A DNA stretch of 64,000 nucleotides from assembly GCF_001194135.2 (NCBI RefSeq), contig NC_068987.1, forward strand, positions 19,026,188 through 19,090,187. The letters run 5' to 3'. Every line of letters begins with the position of its first letter. Position 1 is the first letter of the stretch. A model generated the notes under the pieces. It ran no database searches, was not told the origin of the DNA, and worked only from the letters and a program-made list of their open reading frames with translations. Origin of the DNA: Octopus bimaculoides. Lineage: Eukaryota. The translations under genes and the position numbers were made by a program. Positions 13,495 to 51,271 of this stretch are shown one piece after another.

Positions 13495-15186
13495 ATGGAA
13501 GAAATATCATATGAGAATCAATTTCTTGGAGAAACACAGCTAGAAAATATTGATTTCTCTCAAGAGAAACAGGAGGAGGTACAGAATAAACCCTACTGCA
13601 GTGAAATTTTTACGACAAAAAGTAATTTAAAGCCAAATAAATTTCCTCACTCTGGATCAAAGTTTTATCAATGTAAAGAATGTGGCAAGAATTTTACAAG
13701 AAACAGTTCTTTATATCGGCACCAACTTATTCATACAGGAGAGAAGCCATACCATTGTGATATCTGTGGTAGAAAGTTTTCACGGGAGAGCAGTTTACGT
13801 ACGCATAAGTATACTCACACAGGTGATAAGCCATTCCACTGTGATGTTTGTGGCAAAAAGTTTACTGGAAGTAGTGATTTAACTTACCATAAACGAACAC
13901 ATACAGGAGAAAGGCCATACCAGTGTGACATCTGTGATAAAAGATTTATTGCAAATAAAGATTTGTCTCGGCATAAATTTATACATACAGGAGAGAGACC
14001 ATATCACTGTGATATCTGTGGTAAATCATTCACTCGCAATAGCAGTCTATATAAACACTTACATATTCATACAGGGGGGAATCCATCATTCCAGTGCAAT
14101 ATTTGTGGTAAAGCATTCTTGGACAATACCCATTTAACTCGCCATACACGTACTCACACAGGAGAAAAACCATACCAGTGTGATATCTGTGATAAAGCAT
14201 TTTCTGGAAGTAGTGGTTTATTTTCTCACAAACGTATTCACACAGGAGATAAACCATATCCTTGTGATATCTGTGGTAAATCATTCTCCACTAGCAGTAA
14301 TTTAAATAGCCATAAACGTAGTCATACAGGAGAGAGGCCATACCACTGTGATTTCTGTGATAAAACATTTTCTATGTGCTCTAGTTTGTCTAATCACAAG
14401 CATATACACACTGGGGAGAGTCCATACTGCTGTGATATATGTGGTAAAACATTCTCTACAAAAAGCCATCTAAATAGACACCTGCATATTCATACTGGAG
14501 ACAGCTCTTCATACCAGTGCAATATTTGTAGTAAAACTTTCTCAGAGAGTACAAATTTAACTCGCCACATACGTATTCACACAGGAGAAAAACCATTCCG
14601 CTGTGGTACCTGTGATAAAACATTTACTAGTAGTGCAAGTTTATCTTACCACAAACGTACTCATACAGGAGAGAAGCCATATCACTGTGATATCTGTGGT
14701 AAATCATTCTCTGTCAGCAGTAATTTATATACCCACAAACGTACTCACATGGAGAATCAGAACCACTGTGATATCTGTGGCAAATCATTTTCTGTAGCTA
14801 ATAGTTTATATGCACATAAGCGTACCCACACAGGTGAGAAACCATACCATTGTGACATATGTGACAAATCTTTTTCTGTGAAGTGCAGTTTAACTAACCA
14901 CAAACGTATTCACACTGGAGAGAAACCATACTCTTGTGGTGTCTGTGGTAGGACATTTTCTAGGAGTAGCTTTTTGTCTACACACAAACGTTTACATACA
15001 GGAGAGAAGCCATATAGCTGTAATATCTGTGGTAAATCATTCTCTGCTGCTAGTGGCTTATATTGCCACAAAGGAACTCATACAGGAGAGAAACCACATC
15101 GCTGCAAAATCTGTGGTAAATCCTTCTCTTCTGCTAGTGGTTTATATTGCCATAAACAGACTCACACTGGAGCGAAGCAACACTGA
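13495..15186 (+). CDS. C2H2 zinc-finger protein ZNF-B (563 aa, 18 canonical fingers plus a degenerate N-terminal finger)
   Basis: Uninterrupted ORF with 18 counted fingers and TGEKPY-type linkers. Short acidic leader; no KRAB, BTB or ZAD-like domain visible. Confidence 0.95.
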   Translation: MEEISYENQFLGETQLENIDFSQEKQEEVQNKPYCSEIFTTKSNLKPNKFPHSGSKFYQCKECGKNFTRNSSLYRHQLIHTGEKPYHCDICGRKFSRESSLRTHKYTHTGDKPFHCDVCGKKFTGSSDLTYHKRTHTGERPYQCDICDKRFIANKDLSRHKFIHTGERPYHCDICGKSFTRNSSLYKHLHIHTGGNPSFQCNICGKAFLDNTHLTRHTRTHTGEKPYQCDICDKAFSGSSGLFSHKRIHTGDKPYPCDICGKSFSTSSNLNSHKRSHTGERPYHCDFCDKTFSMCSSLSNHKHIHTGESPYCCDICGKTFSTKSHLNRHLHIHTGDSSSYQCNICSKTFSESTNLTRHIRIHTGEKPFRCGTCDKTFTSSASLSYHKRTHTGEKPYHCDICGKSFSVSSNLYTHKRTHMENQNHCDICGKSFSVANSLYAHKRTHTGEKPYHCDICDKSFSVKCSLTNHKRIHTGEKPYSCGVCGRTFSRSSFLSTHKRLHTGEKPYSCNICGKSFSAASGLYCHKGTHTGEKPHRCKICGKSFSSASGLYCHKQTHTGAKQH

Positions 15187-17690: not shown

Positions 17691-18130
17691 GGGCAGGAGT
17701 GGCTATGTGGTAAGTAGCTTGCTTACCAACCACATGGTTCCGGATTCAGTCCCACTGCGTGGCACCTTGGGCAAGTGTCTTCTACTATAGCCTCGGGCCG
17801 ANNNNNNNNNNTTGGGCAAGTGTCTTCTACTATAGCCTCGGGCCGACCAAAGCCTTGTGAGTGGATTTGGAAGACGGAAACTGAAAGAAGCCTGTCGTGT
17901 ATATGTATATATATATGTATGTATTTGTGTGTGTGTTTGTCCCTCCAACAACGCTTGACAACCGATGCTGGTGTGTTTATGTCCCTGTAACTTAGCGGTT
18001 CGGCAAAAAGAGACCGATAGAATAAGTACTAGGCTTACAAAGAATAAGTCCTGGGGTCAAATTTCTTGACTACAAAAGCGGTGCTCCAGCATGGCCGCAG
18101 TCAAATGACTGAAACAAGTAAAAGAGTAAA
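17691..18130 (+). mobile_element. tRNA-headed CORE-type SINE family 2 (octopus OR-like), full length
   Basis: GGAGTGGCTATGTGGTAAG head, GGTTCCGGATTCAGTCCC B-box-like, CACCTTGGGCAAGTGTCTT CORE-like segment, internal (TA/TG)n, tail TGACTGAAACAAGTAAAAGAG. Confidence 0.88.
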
Positions 18131-18145
18131 TGTATTTTTTTTTTG

Positions 18146-18540
18146 TCTTTTTACTTGTTTCAGTCTCTTGACTGTGGCCATGCTGAAGCACCGCCTTTAG
18201 TCGAGCAAATTGACCCCAGGACTTATTCTTTTAGAAGACTAGTACTTATTCTATCGGTCTCTATTGCCGAACCGCTAAGTTACGGGGACATAAACATACC
18301 AGCATCGGTTGTCAAGCGATGTTGGGGAACAGACACACAAACACATACACACATACATATATATATATACATATATACGATGGACTTCTTTCAGTTTCCG
18401 TCTACCAAATACACTCACAAGGCTTTGGTCGGCCCGAGGCTATAGTAGAAGACACTTGCCCAAGGTGCCACGCAGTGGGACTGAATCCGGGACCATGTGG
18501 TTGGTAAGCAAGCTACTTACCACACAGCCACTCCTTCGTC
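18146..18540 (-). mobile_element. SINE family 2, full length, inverted next to the 17691 copy
   Basis: Reverse complement of 17691-18130 along its length. Confidence 0.88.
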
Positions 18541-18550
18541 TATGATAACA

Positions 18551-19045: not shown

Positions 19046-19229
19046 TACTCTTTTACTTGTTTCAGTCATTTGACTGCGGCCATGCTGGAGCACCTGGTCG
19101 AGCAAATCGACCCCAGGACTTATTCTTTGTAAGCCTAGTACTTATTCTATCGATCTCTTTTGCTGAACCGCTAAGTTACAGGGACGTGAACACACCAGCA
19201 TCGATTGTCAAGCGATGTTGGAGGGACAA

Positions 19230-19268
<39 letters not shown>

Positions 19269-19441
19269 TATATACGATGGGCTTCTTTCAGTTTCCATCT
19301 ACCAAATCCACTCACAAGGCTTTGGTCGGCCTGAGGCTATAGTAGAAGACACTTGCCCAAGGTGCCACGCAACGCAATGGGAATGAACCCGGAACCATGT
19401 GGTTGGTAAGCAAGCTACTTACCACACAGTCACTCCTGCAC
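19046..19441 (-). mobile_element. SINE family 2, full length
   Basis: Direct repeat of 18146-18540. Confidence 0.88.
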
Positions 19442-20439
19442 CTTGTTTAAATATCTAAAGAATAACTTCAGATTCCTATAGTAACAATTAAGAAAATTAG
19501 CTGTTCCTGCAAAATTTCAGTAATGTAGTAAATATACCATAAGTCTGGTTGACCATTTTCAAATTTCCTTATGTTGTTCAACCCTTTGTCTGTCCTGTGT
19601 ATTACATGTGATACGCAGGACATATTTCCTTGATATCCCTGCATCATATATGATACACATTCCCAATTTTTTTCAATCACCAGAATATTTTGGGATCTAT
19701 GAAGGAAAGCTTTATATCACTCGCAACATGTGAAACAAAGTCTAACCAAAAGTCCTGAAAAACAAGCACAGACATTTAAGACAAACTTATGGAAATTGTT
19801 TGGACAAGCAAAAGGTTAAACTCTCCAGGACAGCCATGATTGAGTAGGCCCATTATCAAAAGTACAAGCAGTAAAGACATAAAAATTAGCAGTTACCTGT
19901 TACAACATCAATAATAGCACATTGAACAATAAAATTTTATTACGGCAAACATAAATTGCTAGTATACAGCTTTATTTAAATATAAAAAAAAAGCAGCTGT
20001 CATTCTGATTTGTTTTTATATTTTATTCAATCAATATTTTATCCAAATACAAGGTGTTAGCTATTGCAGTACACTAAAATTATTTCATAGTGTACAGATG
20101 GAAACGCCCTATTTTGTTCATTAATTTTCTTGATAAAAAAATTGTTTCCCAAATAATAGCCACTTAATAGTAACATGTTAATGATACTGATGTGATAAAA
20201 ACAGCATACAAATATATTCAAATACAACTGTATATAGTTATACCACAGTACATGTGTATTTTCCATATATTGTTTCATGATGTGAGGTTGGTTCATAGAC
20301 ATAAAGTGATGCAGATTGCAAAGCAGCATGGCCAGTAAATCAGAATGCCATTGGTGAAAAATGTGTATAGAACGACAGTGGTGCACTTAACCTCAATGAG
20401 GATAAAGCTGAAAAGAATGATGCATGAAAATGCTTCTAC

Positions 20440-23284: not shown

Positions 23285-23286
<2 letters not shown>

Positions 23287-23334
<48 letters not shown>
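23287..23334. repeat. (TA)n microsatellite
   Basis: Read directly. Other (TA)n tracts flank the gaps near 40480 and 55554-55655. Confidence 0.95.
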
Positions 23335-23338
<4 letters not shown>

Positions 23339-23399: not shown

Positions 23400-24676
23400 T
23401 GCTAAATTGTCCACCGAAAGCCATTGTAATTGACATTGGCTGTAAAATTACTTTCGGCTGTCTGTCCAATTTGTAATACAGTAATATGCTTTTTCTCCTG
23501 TGTGAAAATGTTTGTGGGTAGACAAGCTATTTTTAGAAAATATTTTATCACAAAGATCACGATGGAATGGTTTCTCTCCTGTATGAGTACATTTATGGTT
23601 AGATAAATGTTTTGCCACATAAATCAAAATGGTATAGTTTCTTTCTTGTGTGAGTTTGTGTTTAAATAAATTACTATGGACAGAAAATGGTTTACCACTG
23701 ATATTGCAACAACATAGTCTTTTTTCTCTTTTATTGATTACATTAAAATAATCTGCTGTATCACACCAGCACAGTCGTATGGTATATCTCCAATACAAAT
23801 ATGTTTGTGAATTTATAAACCACCCATATAAGAAAACTTTTTACCACAGATATCACATTGGTATGTCTTTTCTCCTGTGAAAATTCTCATGGTTATATAA
23901 GTTACATGCCTGAGAGAGTGTTTTGCCACAGATATCACAACAGTATAGATTTTCTTTTGAGTGAACATGCATATTACTAGTTCAACTACCATTTGTCACA
24001 TACGTTTTATCACATATATCACAGTGGCACAGTTTCTCTCCTGTATGAATGAATACGTGTCAACATAAATGGCTAACTGGAAGGAATGTGTTATCACAGA
24101 TATCAGAGTGATAGGATATTTTTCTTGTATGAATATGTGCATGGCAAAATTAAATTCACTTTGAGTGTGTTTTAACACAGATATTGCTTTCATATAACCA
24201 GTTTTCTTTTGTATGAATGCATATGTGGCTATATAATTTGCTACGTCAAGAGAATGCTTTACCACAAATATCACAGTATTATGGTCTCTTCATATATGTT
24301 TGTGTTGAGTTACATCACTTTTACCAGTAAACCTTTTGCCACAAATATTACAGTAGATAGGTTTATCACCTGTGTAAAAATACTTGCATGTACGTAAACT
24401 GCTCCCTTGTGAAAACTTTCTACCAACGATATCACAATGACATGGTCTTTCTTTTGTGTTAAGTTGGTGATGATATATAGGACTGTTTCTTGTAAAATTT
24501 TTGCCAAATTCTTTACATTGATAAAACTTTGACCCAGAGTGAAGCAATTTATGTTGATTTAAATTATTTTTTTGTTGTAAAAATGCCACTGAATTAGGAT
24601 TTATTTTTTATCCCTTCCTGTCTCCTCAATATTGTTCACCAAGATGCTTTATCTCATATGATTCTTCTTCCATCAT
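23400..24676 (-). pseudogene. ZNF-C, frameshifted pseudogene of the ZNF-A/B subfamily
   Basis: Start MMEEESYEIKHLG, then LLHSGSKFYQCKEFGKNFTRNS, nearly identical to ZNF-A. Many frameshifts and stops. Retains the paralogous splice acceptor (AG at 25055-25056). Confidence 0.88.
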
Positions 24677-26215: not shown

Positions 26216-27268
26216 CTAAACCGCATACAATCTACTTATGGCCATTAACAAGTGGCCAAAAGGTTTCTTTTTCACTTTATTTTTCCACAAAAATTCGTGG
26301 AGGTACGAAGAAAATAATGCATCACTGGTGCCGCATTGTTTTTTTAATTTCCTTTTCGCTCGCATCCATGTATTCTCGATAATCTGTGCGTGTACATTTG
26401 GATCGTTTTGGTTCACGATATCCCGTTCGTGCACCACGGAGTCGTTCGAGTACAATCTAAAATCGATATCTTTCAGCAGATCGAAAGATACCCAAGCATC
26501 AGCAATGATGCGGCTACCTGGAAGGATCCATTGTCGGATGATAGGCTCCAACGTTTGCTGTTTTCTGTTGGGGACTTCAACCATACAGCACTTACCACTC
26601 CGGCGTTCGATCGCACCGAACACCCAGTGACCAGCGCGCCATTGGCCCTTGTGGTATCTGCTGTTTAGGAATTTCGATTCACCCAGCTCTACCACAATCG
26701 GTGTACCGTCCTCGCCCACACCTCCAAGTACTGTGGGTGATTTCTGGAGATCCCATTCTACTACTTCTCGCAGAAAATTACACCAGTCCACTATTGTGTT
26801 CTTATTCACATGGAGTTGCTCCATCATTTCTTTCTGCTGGTAGTCCTCAACCCACATGTTAATTAAAAGAAGAAGGTCCAGTAACGACATGCGGCTTCTT
26901 TCAAAAAAAGACCCTTTTCGAATGGATTGGGTAAAATTGTGCCGGCGACAATTCCAAATCTTCTTGTCGAGTTTCTTCGTCAGAGTGATAAGTGTACACG
27001 GTTCGCCACACGTACCACAGTTGACAGAGTTACTTAAGAGTCTCCGTTTTGCCATCCATTCAATCGCTGAATCTACGTCCATTGTCTGAGTGGCTAACTC
27101 CAGCAGTGTACACGATTCTTCTTTGATTTCATCTTCATCCATCACTTTGTCCACAATTCTTTTTCTTCTACAATACGTCATTACGAAAGAGTAAATTGAA
27201 GTGGAGTGAGAACAATAACTTTCCTCCGAACTGTTTTCATTTACTGTGTGAAAGAAAGGATGATACAA
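26216..27268 (-). CDS. Merlin/IS1595 (ISXO2-like) DDE transposase-derived protein; first catalytic Asp replaced by Gly; candidate domesticated gene (probable start M30 at 27181)
   Basis: N-terminal CxxC...C..H zinc-ribbon-like segment, SIRKGSFFERS, helix-turn-helix-like TIVDWCNF, then VELGES (family VEIDES), WVFGAIER, ADAW (family SDxW), HAQIIENTW (family HTQxIExxW) and YLHEFLW. Confidence 0.85.
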   Translation of the reverse strand: MYHPFFHTVNENSSEESYCSHSTSIYSFVMTYCRRKRIVDKVMDEDEIKEESCTLLELATQTMDVDSAIEWMAKRRLLSNSVNCGTCGEPCTLITLTKKLDKKIWNCRRHNFTQSIRKGSFFERSRMSLLDLLLLINMWVEDYQQKEMMEQLHVNKNTIVDWCNFLREVVEWDLQKSPTVLGGVGEDGTPIVVELGESKFLNSRYHKGQWRAGHWVFGAIERRSGKCCMVEVPNRKQQTLEPIIRQWILPGSRIIADAWVSFDLLKDIDFRLYSNDSVVHERDIVNQNDPNVHAQIIENTWMRAKRKLKKQCGTSDALFSSYLHEFLWKNKVKKKPFGHLLMAISRLYAV

Positions 27269-28184
27269 AGCCAGTTACATGAAACATAATAGTTATTGAT
27301 TAGTGATCTAATTTTTTAAAAATGAACAATCAGAAGTTAAAAAATAAAGAAAATACATTTTGAATTATTTTTTATTAAATACGTACGTACAAGAATGTTT
27401 AATTAAATATACAAAATTCGGTGAATGTTTATCAAAGTTCGAAAACTTCCTACCGGAAATAGGATTTCAGATTTCGGAAAACTGAATGAAATCAAAACTA
27501 TACAATCAAAGGAGAAGAAAAAAAAGGATTTACATGGAACTCTAAAGTCAAAGTACAACTTCGTAGTATTATGATATTTAATAATGTTAATAATGTAACG
27601 TGATGAGCTTAAACAAAAATGTTAAACTTGAAGTTGTATAAGTGTTTTTTCCCCCTCCCTTTTGCTAAACACCATACCTTATGGTGAGCCTTTACTCCTT
27701 CAGAATTGTCAATGACCTGACGAAAATGAAATTTCCAAATTTGCAAACGATTTCTCGGGGGCGGGGGGTTTTCCTCTTGAGACAAATTTGAAAGTTTCGA
27801 CAAGTTTCCATAATAGAACTCTTGTAACAAGGGGAGTTAATTCATTTCAATAGTAACAGAAGAGTTTCTTCTCACTCTTAGCAACGGGGGTGAATGGGCA
27901 GAGCTGAGCAATGCTTTAATCGAACATTGTAAATATAATCAAATTATTATTGTATATTTAAAATTGTAAATATTTAATCGATACAGCTACTTCACCCCTT
28001 TTATGTTTGTCTGCCCTTGTTCGTCCCCTCTTTGTAATGCCTTTATGGCAAATATTTATGAAATAAAGTAGCAGCCAAATATCCCCCAAATAACACTACC
28101 TTAAAAAAATTTAGACATATTGAACTATGTTGTCCCTGATGTTAAATGGCAATGACTAGACCATTTGATCATATGTGCTTTGAC

Positions 28185-29988: not shown

Positions 29989-30180
29989 AGAGGGCTCAGA
30001 AAATTCACACAACCCGAGCACTAAATCTCAACGTCCAGTCACAGGAGTGAAACAGAAATCATCTAATACCCTAACCCTAACTCTAACCCTCGATTTAGTG
30101 CTCGGGTTGTGTAGAGCTGACCATGTGAATTTTCCGAGCTCTCTAGGGTTAGGGTTAGGGTTGGGGTTATGGTTAGGGTT
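29989..30180. repeat. Foldback element with CCCTAA and TTAGGG runs
   Basis: ACACAACCCGAGCACTAAATC / GATTTAGTGCTCGGGTTGTGT inverted pair, plus an outer GAAAATTCAC/GTGAATTTTC pair and telomeric hexamers in both orientations. Confidence 0.85.
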
Positions 30181-31701
30181 ACATAATTCCTCATCTCTTA
30201 AATATAGAACTGTAAAACATTAGTTTGGGAAAATGACAAGACGAAATTGAGGCTGATCAAGGTGTCTGCCAAACAGACATAAATTCTATATAAATGCAAG
30301 CTGGTTTATCTTTCAGAATTTTTGCAGTTTGCCATAACAGATACCAATGCTGAATGTTCAGAGGAAATGAAAACTCACACTTTAGAAAATACAATTCAAA
30401 ATCATTTGATTTTTTTAAATTTTGATTTTAATTTTATATTTTTCCACACTACTCTATTCTAGCAGTAGAGATATTTTTCAATGTCCACAGTAAAATGTCC
30501 TTTTGGTAATATTTCTCCAAACAGGCAAGATTATTACAAAAGAAAGAACTAATGAAATTAGGCTAGCAACATTATTAATTGTATCAAATAATAACATTTC
30601 AGGAGTAAATGTAAACTGCAAATGTTAACAAAACAATAATATAACTGTCTGATTTGCATCCAGACTGAAGATTTGGTACAAATACAGACTAAAGAATTTA
30701 ATTGAGATTAAATTTGATATATATTTTCAACAAAAAAAAAGTAGAAAAGTGATATATCTTTATATGTAACATTCACAAATTACACCATGATGTTCACACA
30801 AAATTTAGGATAATAAAACTCTCACATATGTCCTATTATTGCCATCATTTGAACATCCACTTTTCTATGCTTGCACAGCTCAGGTGGAATGCATTAAGGC
30901 AGATTTGCTGCAGCTAGATGCTCATCCTGTCACTACCTCTGACCTGTTTCCAAACAAGGTAATATCATCTCAGGCCCTTTGAACATGACCAGTTCAATGG
31001 CTGCATGTCTTTTCAATGTAAGATTGCTGATTGTAACTACATCACTGTTCATAAAAAACTGTTGTTTGTTTGCAAATAATGTCAAGACAAGGAGACACAT
31101 TCACACATATATACACAACAGGTATCTTTCAATTTCTATCCAGCAATTCCGCTCACAAGATTTTAGTTAGCATGAGAATGAATTTGAAACCATGTAATTA
31201 CAAAGTAAACTTCTTAACTATACAGCCATGCCTATGTCAATCAGGTCTTAAAATTTCAGTTGTTGCTTGTGTATTAGTTCATTACAGAATGACAAAACAA
31301 TAATGAAGAACCTCGTTGTGGTATAACATACCTCACCACGTGGTCAAATACATCAAAAATATTCTTTCCTCTTTCTGTAAATACATCTGACAACATACAT
31401 ATTTATTCTGAAAGAATACTTTTATTAAAAATAACTGAGTGGTAAGTGTAATGTAGATAAATTTGTGGTTATATAATAATGCAGTGGGATAAGCCACTAC
31501 TCAGAAAAAATAACTTCCCACTAATAGCTTGGCAATATCAATTCTTTCCCATGTAAGCATTATTATGACATCATTAACAATATTTGTTGGATGTATTTTG
31601 TGACAGATAAAACAATGTTATACTTTCTCTTTAATGTGAAGGTATTGACATTCAGTAAAATTACTTCTTTGATGGAATAATTTAATACAGTTATCACAAT
31701 G

Positions 31702-32223
31702 TTATTGTTTCTCTCCCGTGTGAACACGTTTATGACAAGATAAAATATTACTTCTGGAAAAAGTTTTACCACAAATATCACAGCGATATGGTTTCTCTCC
31801 TGTGTGAATACGTATATGGGTATATAAATTAGTATTATGAGAAAACATTTTACCACAAATATCACAGTGGTATTTTTTCTCTCCTGTGTGAACACGTTTA
31901 TGAGAAGATAAATCACTATTTCTAGAAAAAGTTTTACCACAGATATCACACTGATGTGGTTTCTCTCCTGTGTGAATTCGTTTATGGATAGATAAACTAC
32001 TTCTACGAGATAATGACTTTCCACAAATATCACAATGGTAATATTTCCCACCGGTGTGAATATGTTTGTGGCAAGCTAAATGATCGCTCCGTGAGAAAGA
32101 TTTGCCACAAATATCACAGCAATATGGTTTTTCATCTGTGTGAATACGTTTGTGTTTAGTCAAGTTACTCTTTAAAGAAAATGTTTTATCACAGATATCG
32201 CAGGAATATGGCCTTTTTTCCAT
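31702..32223 (-). CDS. ZNF-D: six intact C2H2 fingers from an internal Met; flanks decayed (truncated gene or young pseudogene)
   Basis: Six canonical fingers. The ancestral start is ATA (32431-32433) where ZNF-E has ATG, with stops in the leader. An in-frame TAA at 31702-31704 is followed by degenerate fingers. Confidence 0.7.
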   Translation of the reverse strand: MEKRPYSCDICDKTFSLKSNLTKHKRIHTDEKPYCCDICGKSFSRSDHLACHKHIHTGGKYYHCDICGKSLSRRSSLSIHKRIHTGEKPHQCDICGKTFSRNSDLSSHKRVHTGEKKYHCDICGKMFSHNTNLYTHIRIHTGEKPYRCDICGKTFSRSNILSCHKRVHTGEKQ

Positions 32224-33589: not shown

Positions 33590-34860
33590 AAAGCATTCTG
33601 ATCCCTTGGAAGGAGGAAGTGGAGAGTGGAGTGCTACTAGTGATGGCAGTGGTGCAGCAGACGAAGCATAAAGTCAGGATGGTATTAGATTTCCGAGAGC
33701 TGAACAACCACATATTGTGCCATATGGGCAGTGAGCTATGGACATTTGCAGCAAAACCTTGAGAGTGTGGAGGCAGATGATAGGCACCTCCACAATCATC
33801 GATTTGAAGTCAGCATATCTGCAGCTGCATATGGCTGAGGAGACTGTGGAAATATCAGCTAGTTAGGTACAAGGGTCAGACATACTACCTGATCAGGTTA
33901 GGATTTGGGTTGAATTCAGCACTGAAGATTATGGCAACAATTCTCAAAACCATCCTGGGAAAGGCGGACAAAGTGAAAAGAGCCACCAATTTATTACTGA
34001 CAACATCCTGGTGGACAAGAGCAAAGGAAGTCAGAAGTCACCTGAAGAGTTTTGGGCTAATTGGCAAACCACCAGAGGTGATGGAAGGAGGAGCTGCACT
34101 TGGACTCGAGCTAGGGAGAGACAAGGCCAGCGCGTTGGTGTTTCGGAGAGGGAATGAGATCCCAGAACTGGGCACAAAGACAAGTAGGCAAGAACTGTTT
34201 TCTGTGTGTGGGAAGCTGCTGGGACACTACCTGATTGCAAGATGGCTCCGGACAGCATGCAGCTTCATGAAGAGGCGAGCTGAAGGAGTGAGGTGGAGTG
34301 ACAAAATGGGCGAGAAGACAACTACCATGATGCAAAAAGTCTTGGAGAGAGTGATTGCGGAGGACCCAGTAAGAAGAAACTGGTACGTGCCCAAATTGAA
34401 GAATGGGATCATGTAGTGTGATGCTAGCAGCATAGCAACAGGAGTTGTCCTGGAAATTGGAGGTGTTCTGGTGGAGGATGCAGCCTGGCTCAGGAAGAAG
34501 GACGACTGCAACCACATCAACGTAGCAGAGCTGGATGCTGTGTTGAAGGGGCTGAACCTGGCCTTGAGGTGGGGGCTGTGTACCATCAAGATCTGGACCA
34601 ATTCAGCCACTGTACTTAGATGGGTGGGATCAGTGGTCACTGGCGAGTGGAGGGTGTGAACCAAAGGAGGCACAGAGATGCTGATAAGACGCCGTTTAGG
34701 AATTCTGGGCTAGCTAGCTGCCAAGTTTGACCTGAGGCTGAGTGTGGTTTTTGTGCACTCTGAGAAGAATAGAGCAGACGTCCTGACCAGAGTAAAGAAA
34801 GCCTGGTTGCAGGTGCTGGGGTATCTGGAGAAAGGAGTGGCTGTAGTGTGTCGACTGAGT
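33590..34860 (+). mobile_element. Decayed retroelement RT plus RNase H; superfamily uncertain
   Basis: VVQQTKHKVRMVLDFRELNNH, IIDLKSAYLQLH, LWKYQLV..YLIRLGFGLNSA, CDASSIATGVVLE, EDAAWLRKKDDCNHINVAELDAV, NRADVLTR, with frameshifts and stops. Confidence 0.8.
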
Positions 34861-36529: not shown

Positions 36530-36700
36530 GCCTTGAGCCAACAAGAGATGTTATAGGTGGTTGTACCACCTGCAAGAAATAGGCAGTTGAATCGCCCTCA
36601 AATCACATCCTACAGATGTATTTTTTCCACTTAAATTATGAGCTTTGACGCCTTCCTTTCATTAGACACGAAAAAACATTAAGGAAATAAGAAAATGAAT

Positions 36701-36870
36701 AGGCGCAGGAGTGGCTGTGTGGTAAGAAGTTTGCTCCCCAACCACATGGTTCTGGGTTCAGTTCCACTGCGTGGCACCTTGGACAAGTGTCTTCTTTTAT
36801 AGCCTCGGGCCGACCAAAGCCTTGTGAGTGGATATGGCAGACGGAAACTGAAAGAAGCCCGTCGTATAGG
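36701..36870 (+). mobile_element. SINE family 2, 5' half
   Basis: GGCGCAGGAGTGGCTGTGTGGTAAG...GAAAGAAGCCCGTCGTAT. Further partial or decayed copies lie near 990-1185, 21690-21875, 23125-23290, 31090-31240, 39055-39395, 43150-43270, 45375-45670, 50150-50310 and 58760-58930. Confidence 0.8.
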
Positions 36871-38477: not shown

Positions 38478-39939
38478 GGCCTGTATACACACCAAGTTAA
38501 ATGGTACTACAAGGTTAGAAACCCTTTCAGCCACATTGACAAAACTCCTGCATTCTCATACAAGTTCAGTTGTTTTGATTTGATTTTGCCACAGAGTGAT
38601 GTCCATGTCGATACCCCCACACCCCAAAAAACTGGCGCTAATTTAGCATCAGTACCTAGCAGATAAGACTATGTGGGTCATATAGTATCATTGTGGAAGT
38701 TAGGATATTCCATCCATCTGCAGCACTGAAAATTGTGACTTCTATAATCTTAAGCACACTGATGTAGTATGGGCAGGAGCAGTTGTGGTCTTCATTGATG
38801 ACTGCTGAAATTTTTGGGGCTACATGTGGTGGAGTTTTCACTGCAGTGGACATGAAATACCACTACTTACATTGCTTCAGGCACACAAATGGAATAGCAA
38901 AAAGTGAAAACAGTTGTGACTCTCTGGGCCCCTGCATGGATGCATCCCTTGTTTTAAGTTTCATGTGGTTGAAATCATTGTCTTCATTAATCACCAAAGA
39001 ACAGACATAACATCTTCCTCTTGTTTCCTTGCTTCTTTATTCATTTGCTTTCTCATCTTTTGTTTTAGTCATTAGGCTGCAGTCCTGTTGAGGTACCACT
39101 TTGAATATTGTAGTCAAACAAATCAACCTTATTTTCACAAGCCTGGTACTTATTCTATTGGTAACTTTTTTGTTGAACCACTAAGTTAAGGTATGTAAGC
39201 AAACTAAAGCCAGTTGCCAAGTGGTTGTGGGGGTCTAAGATACACATACAACAGGCTTCTTTCAATTTCCTCCACCAAATCTGCTCACAAGGCTTTGATC
39301 AGCCTGGGGCTATAGTAGAAAACACTTGCTCAAAGTGCCACTGAACTTGGAATCATGTGACTGAGAAGCAAACTTCTTACCGTACAGCCATACCTGGCAG
39401 CTGCTAGATCATTTTTGAAGTTTGACAGATGTACTATTATCATATTACATAGTAGGCATTCATTGGTTTTGAGAGATCATGGATCTGTACTTGAAGTTGT
39501 ATTAGTTGCTGATGGTGGTGCAGTATCTGCTGTGGTTGCAGAGGTCTACTAATCGAGAGAGGCAGTCACACATACAGCAAGTGCATTTGAAGGTGCTCTC
39601 TACCAGTGCTACTGGTTTCCTCTCAGGTCACCTCAGCAAATGTACAAGCCCAAAACTATTGTGTATCTTCTACATTTACACCTCTATTCTACCCCCTCTC
39701 AAATGCCTACTTCTGGCACTGCTTCTTCTATTCCCCTCCTTAGGCTACCAAGAACTTTAGTATTGGGGCCACAAGAAAATGCACCCAGTATATTCTGTAA
39801 AGTGTGCTTTTTTATGTATGCAAGTGTGTATATATATTTATATATAAATACACACCCACATAATACTTATAAATATATAATGTATGTAATAATGTACATA
39901 TCACAAACAATAGCATATTTATTTATTCTTTTCTGCTCT

Positions 39940-43777: not shown

Positions 43778-44632
43778 TCAGGGTGGGAGGGATTCTCCTT
43801 CTGAATGAAGAGATTTGTGTCTTGTGAAATTGCTACTTCGAGAAAAAGCCTTTCCACATATATCACATTCATATGGTATCTCTCCTGTGTGAACACGTTC
43901 ATGACTCGATAAAAAACCACGACTGGAAAATGTTTTGTCACAAACATGACACTGGTGTTTCTCTTCAGTGTGAATATGCAGGTGTTTGTGGTAGCTACCA
44001 TTATAAGCAAATTTTTCACCACAAATATCACACTGGTATGGTTTCTCTCCTGTATGAACACGTTGATGCCATGCCAGATAAGAAATTTTAGAAAACTTTC
44101 TACCACAGATTTCACACTTATATGGTTTTTCACCTATATGACGGCGTTTGTGATGGAATAATTTATCTTTGCATATAAACATTTTCCCACAGATATGACA
44201 TTCATATGATTTCTCTCCTGTGCGAATAGGTTTATGGCTAGTTAAATCATTACTTTGAGAGTCTGTCATGTCAGAGTGACATAGTATCTCACCTGTGTGT
44301 GTATCATTGTGTGTAGTTAAGGCACTATTTGGAGACACTGTTTCTTCAGTGATATCACAGTGATATGACCTTTCTCCTGTCTGAACACAATAGTGGGAAT
44401 TTAGTAAACTATATTTAATAAATCTTTTATCACAAATTTGGCACTCATAAAATTTTGATCTTATGTGAAATAACTTATGTTCACTTAATTCACTTTGTAC
44501 TATGAATGCTCTTCCACAGATTTCACAGAGAGAAGGTTTTCCCTGAGATATTTTCAGTGTTTCATTAGAATGTTCTGTTCCTTTAAACTGTGTTATACCT
44601 TGAATCTGACTCTCACATAATTCTTTCTCCAT
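43778..44632 (-). CDS. ZNF-E C2H2 zinc-finger protein (284 aa; about 6 intact and 3 degenerate fingers)
   Basis: Open frame from MEKELCESQ, TGEKPY linkers, upstream acceptor TTTCAG (AG at 45129-45130). Flanks are paralogous to ZNF-D. Confidence 0.85.
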   Translation of the reverse strand: MEKELCESQIQGITQFKGTEHSNETLKISQGKPSLCEICGRAFIVQSELSEHKLFHIRSKFYECQICDKRFIKYSLLNSHYCVQTGERSYHCDITEETVSPNSALTTHNDTHTGEILCHSDMTDSQSNDLTSHKPIRTGEKSYECHICGKMFICKDKLFHHKRRHIGEKPYKCEICGRKFSKISYLAWHQRVHTGEKPYQCDICGEKFAYNGSYHKHLHIHTEEKHQCHVCDKTFSSRGFLSSHERVHTGEIPYECDICGKAFSRSSNFTRHKSLHSEGESLPP

Positions 44633-48090: not shown

Positions 48091-50437
48091 TGGGAATTTG
48101 CTATCTTTGTTGTAGTGGTGACTTGCTAGTGTATGTTTTTAAAGACCATCATTGCGTAGTCGGTGATCTAAGCTGGTTGTGTATATAATAAATGAAGCCA
48201 ACTCACGAACTTTTAACTTATTTATTGATGGAAATGAATTACTGTGTTACTATCTAGAAAAGAAACACGTAGATAATATAACTACTGGCTGGGATGACAG
48301 CACGTTGCGTCTCGTTGAAGGCTAACTCTGGTACACTGTATGTGAAGATTTCACATTGTATCTTGCACGAAGTGGTCTGCTTGAATGAAGTGCCTAATTG
48401 TTTTAATAGGGTGAAAAGGGAGAGAATTTTAGATCATCCGTGAAGCAATATCACACCAAAGCTTCACGCTGATTGGTCGAAATAATAATGATATTAACTA
48501 TGGACTAGCCGAACTCTTATAAAGAGTAGTAGTCGGAGTGAGCATTTTGGTAGTCTCACTGAGTACATTGTATGAACACATTGATTTAACTTCTACTACA
48601 TAATTTATCTATACCAACCTGTGGCAGGATATAAAATATTTTGAAGAAAATATTTACAAGGCAGACAGATGTTCTCTCTAATATATTCTATTTAAAAGGT
48701 CTAATAATATATCACCCAATGAAGTACTGAAACCATGTTCCAAGTTCTTACTTATTGAAACCACCCTTGGCAGTGGTGAGAGACAGACATACTTCATTGA
48801 AACCCATGATCAGAATGCTATTGTAAGGTAATCATTTTGTAAACCTACTGTCACTGGTTCTTTCTCTAGAGAAACAAAAAACAAAACAATGACAGAATTG
48901 TTAGAGTATCATACAAAATGCTTGGCATTTCATTACGTCCTTTACATATTCTGTGTTTAAATTTTTTGAGTTTTTTTTTTTTAAATCCTAAATTAGTAAC
49001 CTACTGAGGAACAATGTTTTGAACCATTCTCAAGTGAGATGACCAAACAACTACAACATTGTTTTCTACAAAGAGAGGTGTTCTTGGCTAAGGTGGCTGT
49101 TGGAGTCATGGATCTGTTCAGTCAGAACTGACCTGCAGTGAAACAGCAAATGTTGCACAAGCCAACTAAACCAAACTGCTACAGTATAGGGCTTTCCTAT
49201 AAGTAGGTTATCTCCCTTGGCTAGGCGGCGCTCCATGTAGACAATTAAACTTCCACAGACTATCCACGCTATTGTTTCGATGATTCAGCTATCGAAGTAC
49301 TTACTGTGCCTAAGTAGCTGTGAAGTGTCCAAGTTATTAGATGAAACGCCTCACTATATTTGTTCCAATCCTCTGAGCTCTGAGTTCAAAGCTCAGCAAT
49401 GTCAACTTTCATCCATTCAGGGATTGATGAAAAAATATTAATCTGGAGCAGTGGGTTGGAGAAACTGTCAGAACTCTAGACCAGATGCCTTGCAGTATTA
49501 GCCCTGGCTCATTGTGTCTGCAGTTCAAATCTTGCCATGGCCTTCTTGTATGGTAGACTTAGTATGTTGACTGGTTTAACTCCACCACCTTGGTTGACTT
49601 TAGCAGGGACTACTCAACTACATTAAGGCTTGGTATCTGATTTGAGGAAACCTTTCTCCCTCCCTACCTCCCACCAGTTCTGAGGAGCCCTGTAAATGGG
49701 GTTATAGGCACTGACTTCTCTCCATAAAAAAAAGGAGCCTTGATGCAGTAACTCAGTTTGCTAGAAAAGACAAATTAAATCCTGCAATAAAGTACATTAA
49801 TAGTGTAGTGTACGATGGCTGAAATAAAGACAGAGTTGGATGATAACAGCTAGAATATTTTCAGTCATTGGTCTGCTTGATAAGTCTAAACAATAACAAC
49901 AAATTCTACAGAAGGAACACAATTTCACCTGTCTGTCTAGTGCTTGACTTACCTCATTATAATTTATTCCATTCACAGAATACATTTCATTATTCACCCT
50001 TTCTCAGTGATACTTTTTAAATTTTTCATTTACCAAAAATGTGAACTTCAATTTCTAATAACTTGTTATTTTAGCCCCAGGTCAGCATTGAGAAAGCAGA
50101 CTTATGATTAAAGGTAATCCAGCTGTGATTATCCAGCCTTTTTATATATAGGCGCAAGTGTGGCAAGAAGCTTGCTTCTCAACAACATGGTTCCAGGTTC
50201 AGTCCCACTGCACAACACCTTGGGCAAGTGTTATCTATTATATCCTCAGGCCAACCCAAGCCTTGTGAGTGAATTTGGTAGACAGAAACTGAAAGAAAAC
50301 CATCATATATATATATGGAGCCTGGTGTTGCCATCCGGTTTCACCAGTCCTCAGTCAAATCGTCCAACCCATGCTAGCATGGAAAGCGGACGTTAAACGA
50401 CGATGATGATGATGATGATGATATATATGTATGTATA

Positions 50438-51271
50438 CAGGGTGTGGTGAATAAACTAGTGTCTAAATGATGCAAAAATGAAAATAACACTGACATCTCA
50501 TTTTAACAAATATATTTACATATTTACCAAAGTTACATAAAAATATCTTGAAACACTAAAGAGTAAATTTATTCAATAAAATAGCCATTGGCTTTAACCA
50601 CAGCCTCGAGACGACTTCGGAACCTCCTGTAACTCTTCTGGACGGTTTCCTTGTTTAAGTTGGTGAATGCTGCCATAATCCTTGCCTTCAGTTTGTCTTT
50701 CGTGTTACAAAGAGTTTTGTTGGTCTCTTGCTCAACTGCACCCCACACATAATGATCAAGAGGGTTGCAGTCTGGGGACTTAGGTGCCCAGATGTTAGGG
50801 GGTGATGTGGTTGCAGAAATTATCTGACAGCCATTACTGAGTTCTCCCGTGTGACATGGTGCAGAAACCTGTTGCCAGACATAGGGTCTTCCAGCAGCCA
50901 TCCTCTTGACCCAGGGTAGCACTACCTCCTCCAGGCACTTTATGTAGACTTCCGTGTTGTGTCTGAGGCCGTGTGGGAAAATGAATGGAGGCATAACGTC
51001 GCCATCACTAGTGATCACTCCCAACACCATGATTGATTTTTATCACTCTCGGTACATGTCCTCAGATTCACATCCAAACACTCTGAAATGTTTGTATTGG
51101 AGCTTCTGGCATAAATGCCAAGCAGTACAGCATGTTGTATTGTGTCATGGTGTAGTTTTCTCACAGATGGTGCCCAACTGACCCTACTATACTGTGTAGT
51201 TGACAAAATCAGAAACAAACAGTGCGCATGCACGAAATAAAAAATGGCGACAATTTATCCATCACACCCTG
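50438..51271 (-). mobile_element. Internally deleted Tc1/mariner-superfamily element (maT/DD37D-like)
   Basis: Imperfect TIRs CAGGGTGTGGTGAATAAA / TTTATCCATCACACCCTG, flanked by TA. ORF 50569-51030 has VMPPFIF, WQQVSAPCH (catalytic D to V) and SPDCNPLDHYVW. Confidence 0.9.

Follow-up and report, generated by a model that had tools for sequence, protein, structure and literature searches.

Well-documented cases of transposases recruited as host genes come from pogo, hAT, piggyBac, P, MULE, Harbinger and Transib, and cephalopod genomes are known for their expansions of transposons and zinc-finger genes. Merlin elements are defined by terminal inverted repeats (TIRs) of 24-462 bp that begin with 5'-GG and by target-site duplications (TSDs) of 8-9 bp, and putatively domesticated Merlin open reading frames (ORFs) that have no TIRs or TSDs, some of them without the DDE triad and some syntenic between species, were described in Stentor, Symbiodinium and Perkinsela (PMC8101967). 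A catalogue of transcription factors derived from transposable elements (TEs), with Octopus among the organisms included, covers six families and does not mention Merlin (PMC10027918), and our search of the literature found no report of a domesticated Merlin transposase in animals. Here we analyse a gene on the minus strand of a 64,000-nucleotide stretch of the Octopus bimaculoides genome (contig NC_068987.1, positions 19,026,188 to 19,090,187; hereafter the window, numbered from its first letter), which is as a whole best explained, with a probability of roughly 0.78, as a domesticated Merlin (IS1595-like) transposase gene of octopuses. A first-pass annotation, made from the letters of the window, had already proposed a candidate domesticated gene here, and this proposal stands: there are syntenic orthologs with dN/dS ratios of 0.04-0.08 rather than about 1, there are no TIRs, and a glycine in place of the first catalytic aspartate is shared by all of the octopus sequences.

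The testable marks of domestication, namely syntenic orthologs, purifying selection on an intact ORF and the loss of mobility features, are all found at this locus. The protein is of Merlin ancestry, its locus is fixed and syntenic, the ends of the element are lost, as is the first catalytic Asp together with the original make-up of its neighbourhood, selection at the level of the host acts on both domains, and the fold is preserved in the predicted model. By descent the gene therefore belongs to the Merlin/IS1595 family, but it is not a Merlin mobile element, because triad, TIRs and TSD all fail.

The 321-amino-acid (aa) protein read from the window has an exact match in EukProt, and an exact look-up in the contig collection returned nothing on record; the existing annotation of the gene is limited to ‘uncharacterized protein LOC115214241’. 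A single 90%-identity cluster, obtained by searching 5.8 billion sequences, holds the octopus copies of this protein, among them a 321-aa protein common to Octopus vulgaris (CAI9725413.1) and Octopus sinensis (XP_029639225.1) and a 309-aa protein from Logan read-assembly contigs (runs SRR11869390, SRR11869391 and SRR11869394), which represent a third octopod lineage. The window is collinear over more than 20 kb, at 90-94% identity, with both O. vulgaris OX597820.1 and O. sinensis CM016865.1, and a neighbouring 173-aa zinc-finger gene is likewise present at the two loci; judged by this collinearity, the O. vulgaris and O. sinensis copies occupy the same position and qualify as orthologs in the strict sense. 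The Logan contigs (~1.88 kb, with an ORF identical in the three runs) align to window positions 27467-25711 at 90% identity with no splicing-type gap, and at their 3' end they enter a SINE-like (short interspersed nuclear element-like) repeat that is also found in the window. The two Octopus branches are equally far from the third lineage (dS 0.25), which by dS falls outside the pair formed by O. bimaculoides and O. vulgaris (0.15 between them). The split of O. bimaculoides from O. vulgaris and O. sinensis has been dated to ~34 Mya and that of Octopus from Amphioctopus to ~44 Mya (PMC10700109); because the third lineage carries the gene and is equidistant at this dS, the gene is probably older than 34 My.

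How strongly has the coding sequence been held in place? By the Nei-Gojobori method (NG86), the 321 codons of the window and of O. vulgaris show 32 differences, 27 synonymous and five non-synonymous (dN = 0.0066, dS = 0.150, dN/dS = 0.044; binomial p = 2e-14 against a neutral expectation of 21%), which fall at codon positions 1, 2 and 3 in the numbers 4, 1 and 27. Comparison of the window with the third lineage gives 42 synonymous and 14 non-synonymous differences (dN/dS 0.075), that of O. vulgaris with the third lineage a dN/dS of 0.080, and that of O. vulgaris with O. sinensis only two synonymous differences and no non-synonymous one; over the dN/dS comparisons, p ranges from 2e-14 to 4e-18. 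The signal is specific to the frame of the ORF, because the other two frames of the same DNA give ratios of ~4. The N-terminal 150 residues evolve at an omega of ~0.05 in all pairs, the core (residues 151-302) at 0.02-0.09 and the last 19 residues at ~0.14. The 966-bp ORF carries no indel, compared with nine events in 1357 bp of flank (6.4 expected, Poisson P = 0.0017), and it is free of frameshifts and stops in four species. Since a fixed transposon copy is invisible to selection among copies, a dN/dS this low between positional orthologs implies host-level selection, and we hold with high confidence that the gene is maintained by its host.

Family membership follows from a match to Pfam DDE_Tnp_IS1595 (PF12762; E = 1.2e-16, 61.5 bits against a gathering score of 27) that spans profile positions 3-151 of 153 and aa 181-329 of the 350-aa frame considered by the first-pass annotation, which had named this profile as a check. 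The NCBIfam IS1595 equivalog-domain model scores 71.7 bits (7e-20) against a cut-off of 75, a bacterial model that has little weight for a eukaryotic Merlin. A homolog search of the protein database returned 53 homologs, all with PF12762 and most of ~320 aa, and the family alignment used below comprises 42 full-length sequences, 39 non-octopus and three octopus ones. Active-site residues are numbered here in the 350-aa frame; in the 321-aa protein G196 is G167, D257 is D228 and E298 is E269. In the first catalytic column, 38 of the 39 non-octopus members have D, while the three distinct octopus proteins, which together cover four species, all have G, so that Gly196 is common to the orthologs; the second Asp shows no variation in its column, and the Glu is retained. 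All octopus orthologs thus have an incomplete catalytic triad, G-D-E instead of D-D-E.

The substitution does not stand by itself. Of the 101 columns with a conservation of 85% or more, the octopus protein deviates at 22, compared with a median of three for the other members, and the deviations cluster around the active site, at residues 195-207, 256-262 and 294. The segment following the lost Asp has changed from EIDESK-FHRKYHRGQWR to ELGESK-LNSRYHKGQWR, S-D-G-W-x-x-Y beside the second Asp has become A-D-A-W-x-x-F, HTQ near the catalytic Glu reads HAQ, and H-D-V-V-V-H reads N-D-S-V-V-H. Twenty-one of the 22 derived states are identical across the three octopus sequences; in the remaining column the third lineage has Ser and the other two have Asn. 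The ELGES motif with its glycine codon, the two retained acidic residues and the accompanying motif changes, all of which had been read from the window in the first pass, are thereby borne out by codons and alignment alike. In a neighbour-joining tree the octopus clade is nested within the Merlin family and adjoins the element of the sea spider Pycnogonum litorale, its stem being long and its crown very short, as would be expected if a burst of change had given way to constraint. Outside the octopus clade, a 307-aa protein from an ENA contig (P0009) shares the Gly of the first catalytic position (EIGES), and its HTQ motif is deleted; it is probably an independently decayed copy.

The absence of TIRs and of a TSD, also claimed in the first pass, was confirmed. 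The best inverted match flanking the ORF is AT-rich and 18-23 nt long, and 27 of 200 shuffled sequences score equally, which places it at chance level; no TSD is found at the octopus locus, which has no definable ends. The relatives carry long TIRs together with an intact EIDES motif: 93 nt with a 92% match and the terminus GGTAAT in Argonauta hians (locus L006), 52 nt with a 98% match and the terminus GGCAAT on a metagenomic contig (L007), and 102 nt with a 99% match and the termini GGTAAT/GGCAAT in P. litorale (L008), where a perfect 9-bp TSD, ACGTCAATA, is present as well. Candidate ends at the octopus locus were considered and rejected. The TIR pair 26132-26154/27568-27590 (23 nt, 83%) is the AT-rich match equalled by 27 of the 200 shuffles; the 9-mers flanking it, GTTACATTA and GTTAGCCTT, agree at five of nine positions and make only a weak TSD candidate; and the terminal motif of the relatives (GGYAAT...CGG...) has one 1-mismatch match at 27455-27482 (+), which points away from the ORF, with at least one match in 35 of 100 shuffles. 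With regard to copy number, the protein database contains nothing between 96% and 51% identity to the octopus protein. There is no second Merlin copy in the 64-kb window, and the other TE-like ORFs seen there are short fragments; to this extent, the part that was checked, the first-pass statement that all other transposon remnants of the window are broken is upheld.

Two of the relatives deserve a word of their own. The P. litorale copy (OZ207740.1; L008, 2845-4107) is an apparently intact Merlin element of 1263 bp whose state suggests very recent activity, and another apparently intact element lies at 2698-4598 of L006 in Argonauta hians. The A. hians homolog (44% identity) was rejected as an ortholog, being an element with 93-nt TIRs and the intact EIDES motif. 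The closest relatives of the octopus gene are found in sea spiders and in contigs without a species name rather than in the other octopod, Argonauta, which hints that this Merlin lineage spread horizontally between marine invertebrates.

The N-terminal part of the protein, presumed to bind DNA, comprises a basic RRKR N-terminus that is conserved among the orthologs, three short helices, a three-stranded zinc ribbon and a three-helix bundle resembling a helix-turn-helix (HTH). The zinc-ribbon motif CxxC...CxxH is intact, as had been stated in the first pass: C55, C58 and C78 are invariant across the 42 family members, and the strands of the model lie at 63-86. AlphaFold2 (AF2), run with the 42-sequence alignment, predicts helices, a ribbon between the Cys pairs, the helix bundle and an alpha/beta RNase H-like core, with a predicted local distance difference test score (pLDDT) of 85.4 and a predicted template modelling score (pTM) of 0.82; the N-terminal 150 residues modelled alone reach a pLDDT of 90.6 and a pTM of 0.81. 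In a Foldseek search of the PDB with the full model, the top matches are the N-terminal and catalytic core domains of retroviral integrases (E ~2e-4, probability 1.0, template modelling score (TM) 0.3-0.47), and no meaningful relative emerged when the PDB was searched by sequence with the family profile.

Where does the gene begin? The uninterrupted minus-strand frame at 26216-27268 is present as claimed in the first pass, with 350 codons if counted from a TTG, yet the gene is shorter. The 29 upstream codons are excluded from it because their frame is broken in the third lineage by an 11-nt deletion and a 1-nt insertion, and the conserved start is the ATG that yields 321 aa; both differences from O. 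vulgaris in this extension (2/2) are non-synonymous, and it is probably 5' untranslated region (UTR). The polypyrimidine-CAG and CG/GTAGGA strings, which had been read as the acceptor and donor of an intron joining 27454 to 27243, do exist in the sequence as described, but the intron itself is not supported: in the third lineage the acceptor is lost to deletion or to a CAG-to-CAA change, and the contig of that lineage runs collinear through the proposed intron. The block that contains CG/GTAGGA differs little from the third lineage, less, by eye, than the surrounding flanks (80-88% identity), and can be considered a candidate promoter or 5' UTR. Homology to the third lineage breaks off abruptly at ~27467, beside CC/GG, and at this break lies the weak Merlin-terminus-like string GGAAATAGGATTTCAGATTTCGGAAAAC, oriented away from the gene (the 1-mismatch match rejected above). 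String and break could represent a remnant of the element end, a piece of a second element or a lineage-specific indel.

Several observations weigh against a domesticated, DNA-binding gene and have to be set beside the above. As many as 191 Merlin-related proteins were counted in O. bimaculoides (PMC8101967), though none is 51-96% identical to the octopus protein. NG86 ignores the transition bias seen in these sequences, so that dS is somewhat overestimated and omega slightly underestimated; the conclusion of purifying selection does not depend on this bias. Glu194 and Glu197 flank the lost Asp, and from the sequence alone a residual or altered catalysis could be envisaged. A Pfam scan of the protein detected no DNA-binding domain, and in the fold search with the N-terminal model the matches to Tc3 transposase, paired domain, homeodomain, DeoR HTH and zinc-ribbon subunits of RNA polymerase were all below significance (E >= 0.9), a list that is nevertheless consistent with a putative DNA-binding module. 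Flanking sequence common to the third lineage and the window extends only ~290 bp upstream and 505 bp downstream, a stretch that possibly lies within the ancestral element, so that the third-lineage copy counts as putatively syntenic at most. The Logan contigs look like genomic DNA of another octopod and not like transcripts, given their collinearity with the genome and the SINE-like repeat at their end. Finally, the O. vulgaris annotation has two isoforms at the locus, and isoforms were added to that annotation only from PASA transcript assemblies (PMC10700109), which hints, indirectly, that the locus is transcribed in O. vulgaris.

It is conceivable that the gene was domesticated and yet remained catalytic, i.e. 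that it encodes a host nuclease or recombinase with a non-canonical set of acidic residues such as E194 or E197 together with D257 and E298, on the model of RAG1 and the ciliate PiggyMac, which were domesticated with their activity kept. Retention of the second Asp and the Glu, the intact predicted fold, the two glutamates next to the lost Asp and a constraint on the core as strong as that on the DNA-binding part would all fit such an enzyme. However, 38 of 39 relatives have D at the first position, DDE enzymes that lose the beta-1 Asp can no longer bind metal, and seven more conserved residues just after this Asp have been replaced along with neighbours of the second Asp and of the Glu, a pattern that looks like catalytic constraint released and then superseded by a new one; we consider a surviving catalytic activity unlikely. 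A different product, in which the transposase up to LWKNK is spliced to downstream C2H2 exons, is drawn in two independent public gene models, A0A0L8FST4 of O. bimaculoides (380 aa; UniRef), whose N-terminal 302 aa equal the first 302 residues of the 321-aa protein and whose name is ‘C2H2-type domain-containing protein’, and CAI9725412.1 of O. vulgaris. They share the donor, constraint is weaker on the final 19 codons of the unspliced ORF, the O. vulgaris isoforms derive from transcript assemblies, and the gene sits in a C2H2 cluster. Against this, the models use different acceptor exons (24293-24526 in O. bimaculoides, tblastn 100%; 23985-24050 in O. vulgaris, tblastn 95%), the donor in the window has A instead of G at position -1, and the array to which they lead has stops and frameshifts in all three frames, fingers without zinc ligands and a conservation no better than that of neutral DNA (~92% identity to O. 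vulgaris, with 29 gap columns). The unspliced C-terminus, in turn, matches that of the family and is open in all four species. The fusion was rejected, its downstream array being a pseudogene, and is very unlikely to be the functional product; the single-exon ORF is probably the product and the fusions artefacts or minor isoforms.

Might the sequence not be a host gene at all but a member of a transposon lineage that still moves, by itself or in trans, with its ORF kept by selection among copies? Merlin is abundant in O. bimaculoides, as noted, and has been active recently in O. vulgaris, where two families have 11 recent insertions (PMC13282606), and the homology to the third lineage ends abruptly beside a GG dinucleotide like that of a Merlin terminus. 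Yet the copies compared share one locus in collinear DNA and show an omega of 0.044 to which transposon-level selection would be blind; moreover, TIRs, TSD and the catalytic Asp are missing and the protein databases hold no near-identical paralogs, so that we regard a moving element as highly improbable. A neutral relic that stayed open by chance, for which nothing speaks beyond the occasional survival of old ORFs, is effectively refuted by the synonymous excess (p ~1e-14 to 1e-18), by the absence of indels where ~6.4 were expected and by an ORF open in four species.

Returning to the domesticated gene, its history can be put as follows. A Merlin element inserted inside a C2H2 zinc-finger cluster before O. 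bimaculoides separated from O. vulgaris and O. sinensis (~34 Mya), probably also before the split from the more distant octopod. The element lost its TIRs and its transposase the first catalytic Asp (D to G), with changes of residues around all three active-site positions, after which the whole 321-aa protein was frozen by purifying selection acting on the host. Such a protein would no longer cut or join DNA; made mainly from an unspliced single-exon ORF with the native transposase C-terminus, it may act in the nucleus as a sequence-specific DNA-binding factor by means of its N-terminal zinc ribbon and HTH-like module, with the integrase-like core perhaps kept as a scaffold for multimerisation or for contacts with partners or DNA. 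Its likeliest targets would be Merlin-end-like sequences scattered in the genome, and its role that of a transcriptional regulator or a transposon repressor. For a non-catalytic DNA-binding regulator or repressor we see the odds, on what the sequence offers, as evenly balanced. It is tempting to go further and to picture the first Merlin-derived host gene of an animal, octopod-specific and with an active site first rebuilt and then frozen, which binds the ends of the active octopus Merlin families and silences or tethers them, an anti-transposon or regulatory factor born in a zinc-finger cluster; in this full form the proposal is doubtful.

Table 1. Coordinates of the gene, its parts and the neighbouring zinc-finger genes in the window
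Feature	Position	Strand	Details and basis
Conserved coding sequence, Merlin/IS1595-derived protein	26216..27181	-	321 codons plus stop TAG (26216-26218); start ATG 27181 (MTYCRRKR...)
Upstream in-frame extension, outside the conserved protein	27182..27268	-	29 codons from TTG; holds polypyrimidine-CAG (AG 27244-27245)
Non-coding conserved block, ~200-290 bp upstream of the ATG	27380..27467	-	Contains CG/GTAGGA (27448-27453); four-species alignment, by eye
GGT, Gly in place of the first catalytic Asp (G196/G167)	26681..26683	-	42-sequence alignment
GAT, second catalytic Asp, kept (D257/D228)	26498..26500	-	42-sequence alignment
GAG, catalytic Glu, kept (E298/E269)	26375..26377	-	42-sequence alignment
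N-terminal region, aa 1-150, presumed DNA-binding part	26732..27181	-	AF2 model, omega
Zinc-ribbon ligands C55-x2-C58 ... C78-x2-H81 (C84, C87, C107, H110 in the 350-aa frame)	26939..27019	-	Alignment
RNase H-like (integrase-like) core, aa 151-302, active site remodelled	26276..26731	-	Pfam, AF2, omega
GT used as splice donor after ...LWKNK	26274..26275	-	A0A0L8FST4 (O. bimaculoides) and CAI9725412.1 (O. vulgaris, 330 aa) part from the ORF precisely at this point
Decayed C2H2 zinc-finger array, downstream; 3' exons of fusion models	23780..24620	-	tblastn, frame reading
C2H2 gene of the cluster	7143-9031	+	
C2H2 gene of the cluster	13495-15186	+	
C2H2 gene of the cluster	31702-32223	-	
C2H2 gene of the cluster	43778-44632	-	

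The Merlin-derived gene lies within a cluster of C2H2 zinc-finger genes whose finger arrays have an 84-bp period (Table 1). The two genes on the plus strand are tandem paralogs with near-identical N-termini, and the position of the gene at 31702-32223 is conserved in O. vulgaris and O. sinensis. Interstitial telomere-type repeats occur in inverted orientation at 29989-30181 (CCCTAA-like at 30068-30090, TTAGGG-like at 30146-30181), nested with the inverted pairs 29989-30009/30124-30144 and 30007-30027/30092-30112 into a compact palindromic structure. A 168-aa ORF at 33910-34416 (+) matches Pfam DUF7047 (E = 5.8e-19) and is probably a retroelement fragment, while a 153-aa ORF at 50569-51030 (-), with no Pfam match at E <= 0.01, is likely what remains, in truncated form, of a mariner-type transposase, whose C-terminal part it resembles by eye (...DCNPLDHYVWG...). 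Copies of the SINE-like repeat are found at 17695-18130, 18150-18543, 19046-19443, 36699-36868, 39060-39390 and 50158-50316, and the third lineage has an insertion of this repeat a short way downstream of the gene, at the contig ends. The window further contains a (TA)n microsatellite at 23285-23336 and assembly gaps (runs of N) at ~8.2 kb, 53.5-54.1 kb and 55.2-55.6 kb, one of which interrupts a zinc-finger gene.

How, then, does the octopus gene compare with what is known? With Merlin and IS1595/IS1016 elements it shares homology over the whole protein (45-51% identity to P. litorale, Nymphon striatum, A. hians and other contigs), a length of ~320 aa, the same zinc-ribbon cysteines and the same RNase H-like core; it is unlike them in the replacement of the first catalytic Asp by Gly and of 22 of 101 conserved positions, in having neither GG-starting TIRs nor an 8-9-bp TSD, and in residing at an apparently single syntenic locus under host-level purifying selection. 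Retroviral integrases, with their zinc-binding N-terminal domain and catalytic core, are the best structural matches of the predicted model, but at 9-14% sequence identity and the low TM values given above this is a resemblance of fold class and not membership, and D-D-E is incomplete here. A core that has been remodelled and yet remains constrained raises an obvious question: what is the role of a transposase core once the cutting of DNA has stopped?

Merlin domestication has been proposed in the searchable literature for protists only, and on weaker evidence. The protist cases, i.e. ciliates, dinoflagellates and relatives of kinetoplastids, resemble the octopus gene in that an ORF is preserved without the ends of an element; as quoted, they rest on ORF preservation, whereas the octopus case concerns an animal and rests on dN/dS between syntenic orthologs. 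For cephalopod biology the gain would be a lineage-restricted, probably DNA-binding gene. Host genes derived from inactive transposases are known in the pogo-derived CENP-B, Jerky and TIGD, the hAT-derived ZBED and Daysleeper and the MULE-derived FHY3/FAR1. Like the octopus gene, these have lost element ends and catalytic residues, have kept a DNA-binding domain, a presumed one in the octopus gene, are under purifying selection and have orthologs across species; unlike it, they stem from other transposon superfamilies, and a clean animal case that is syntenic, with an omega of ~0.05, a dead catalytic Asp and lost ends, adds Merlin to the superfamilies that feed host proteomes.

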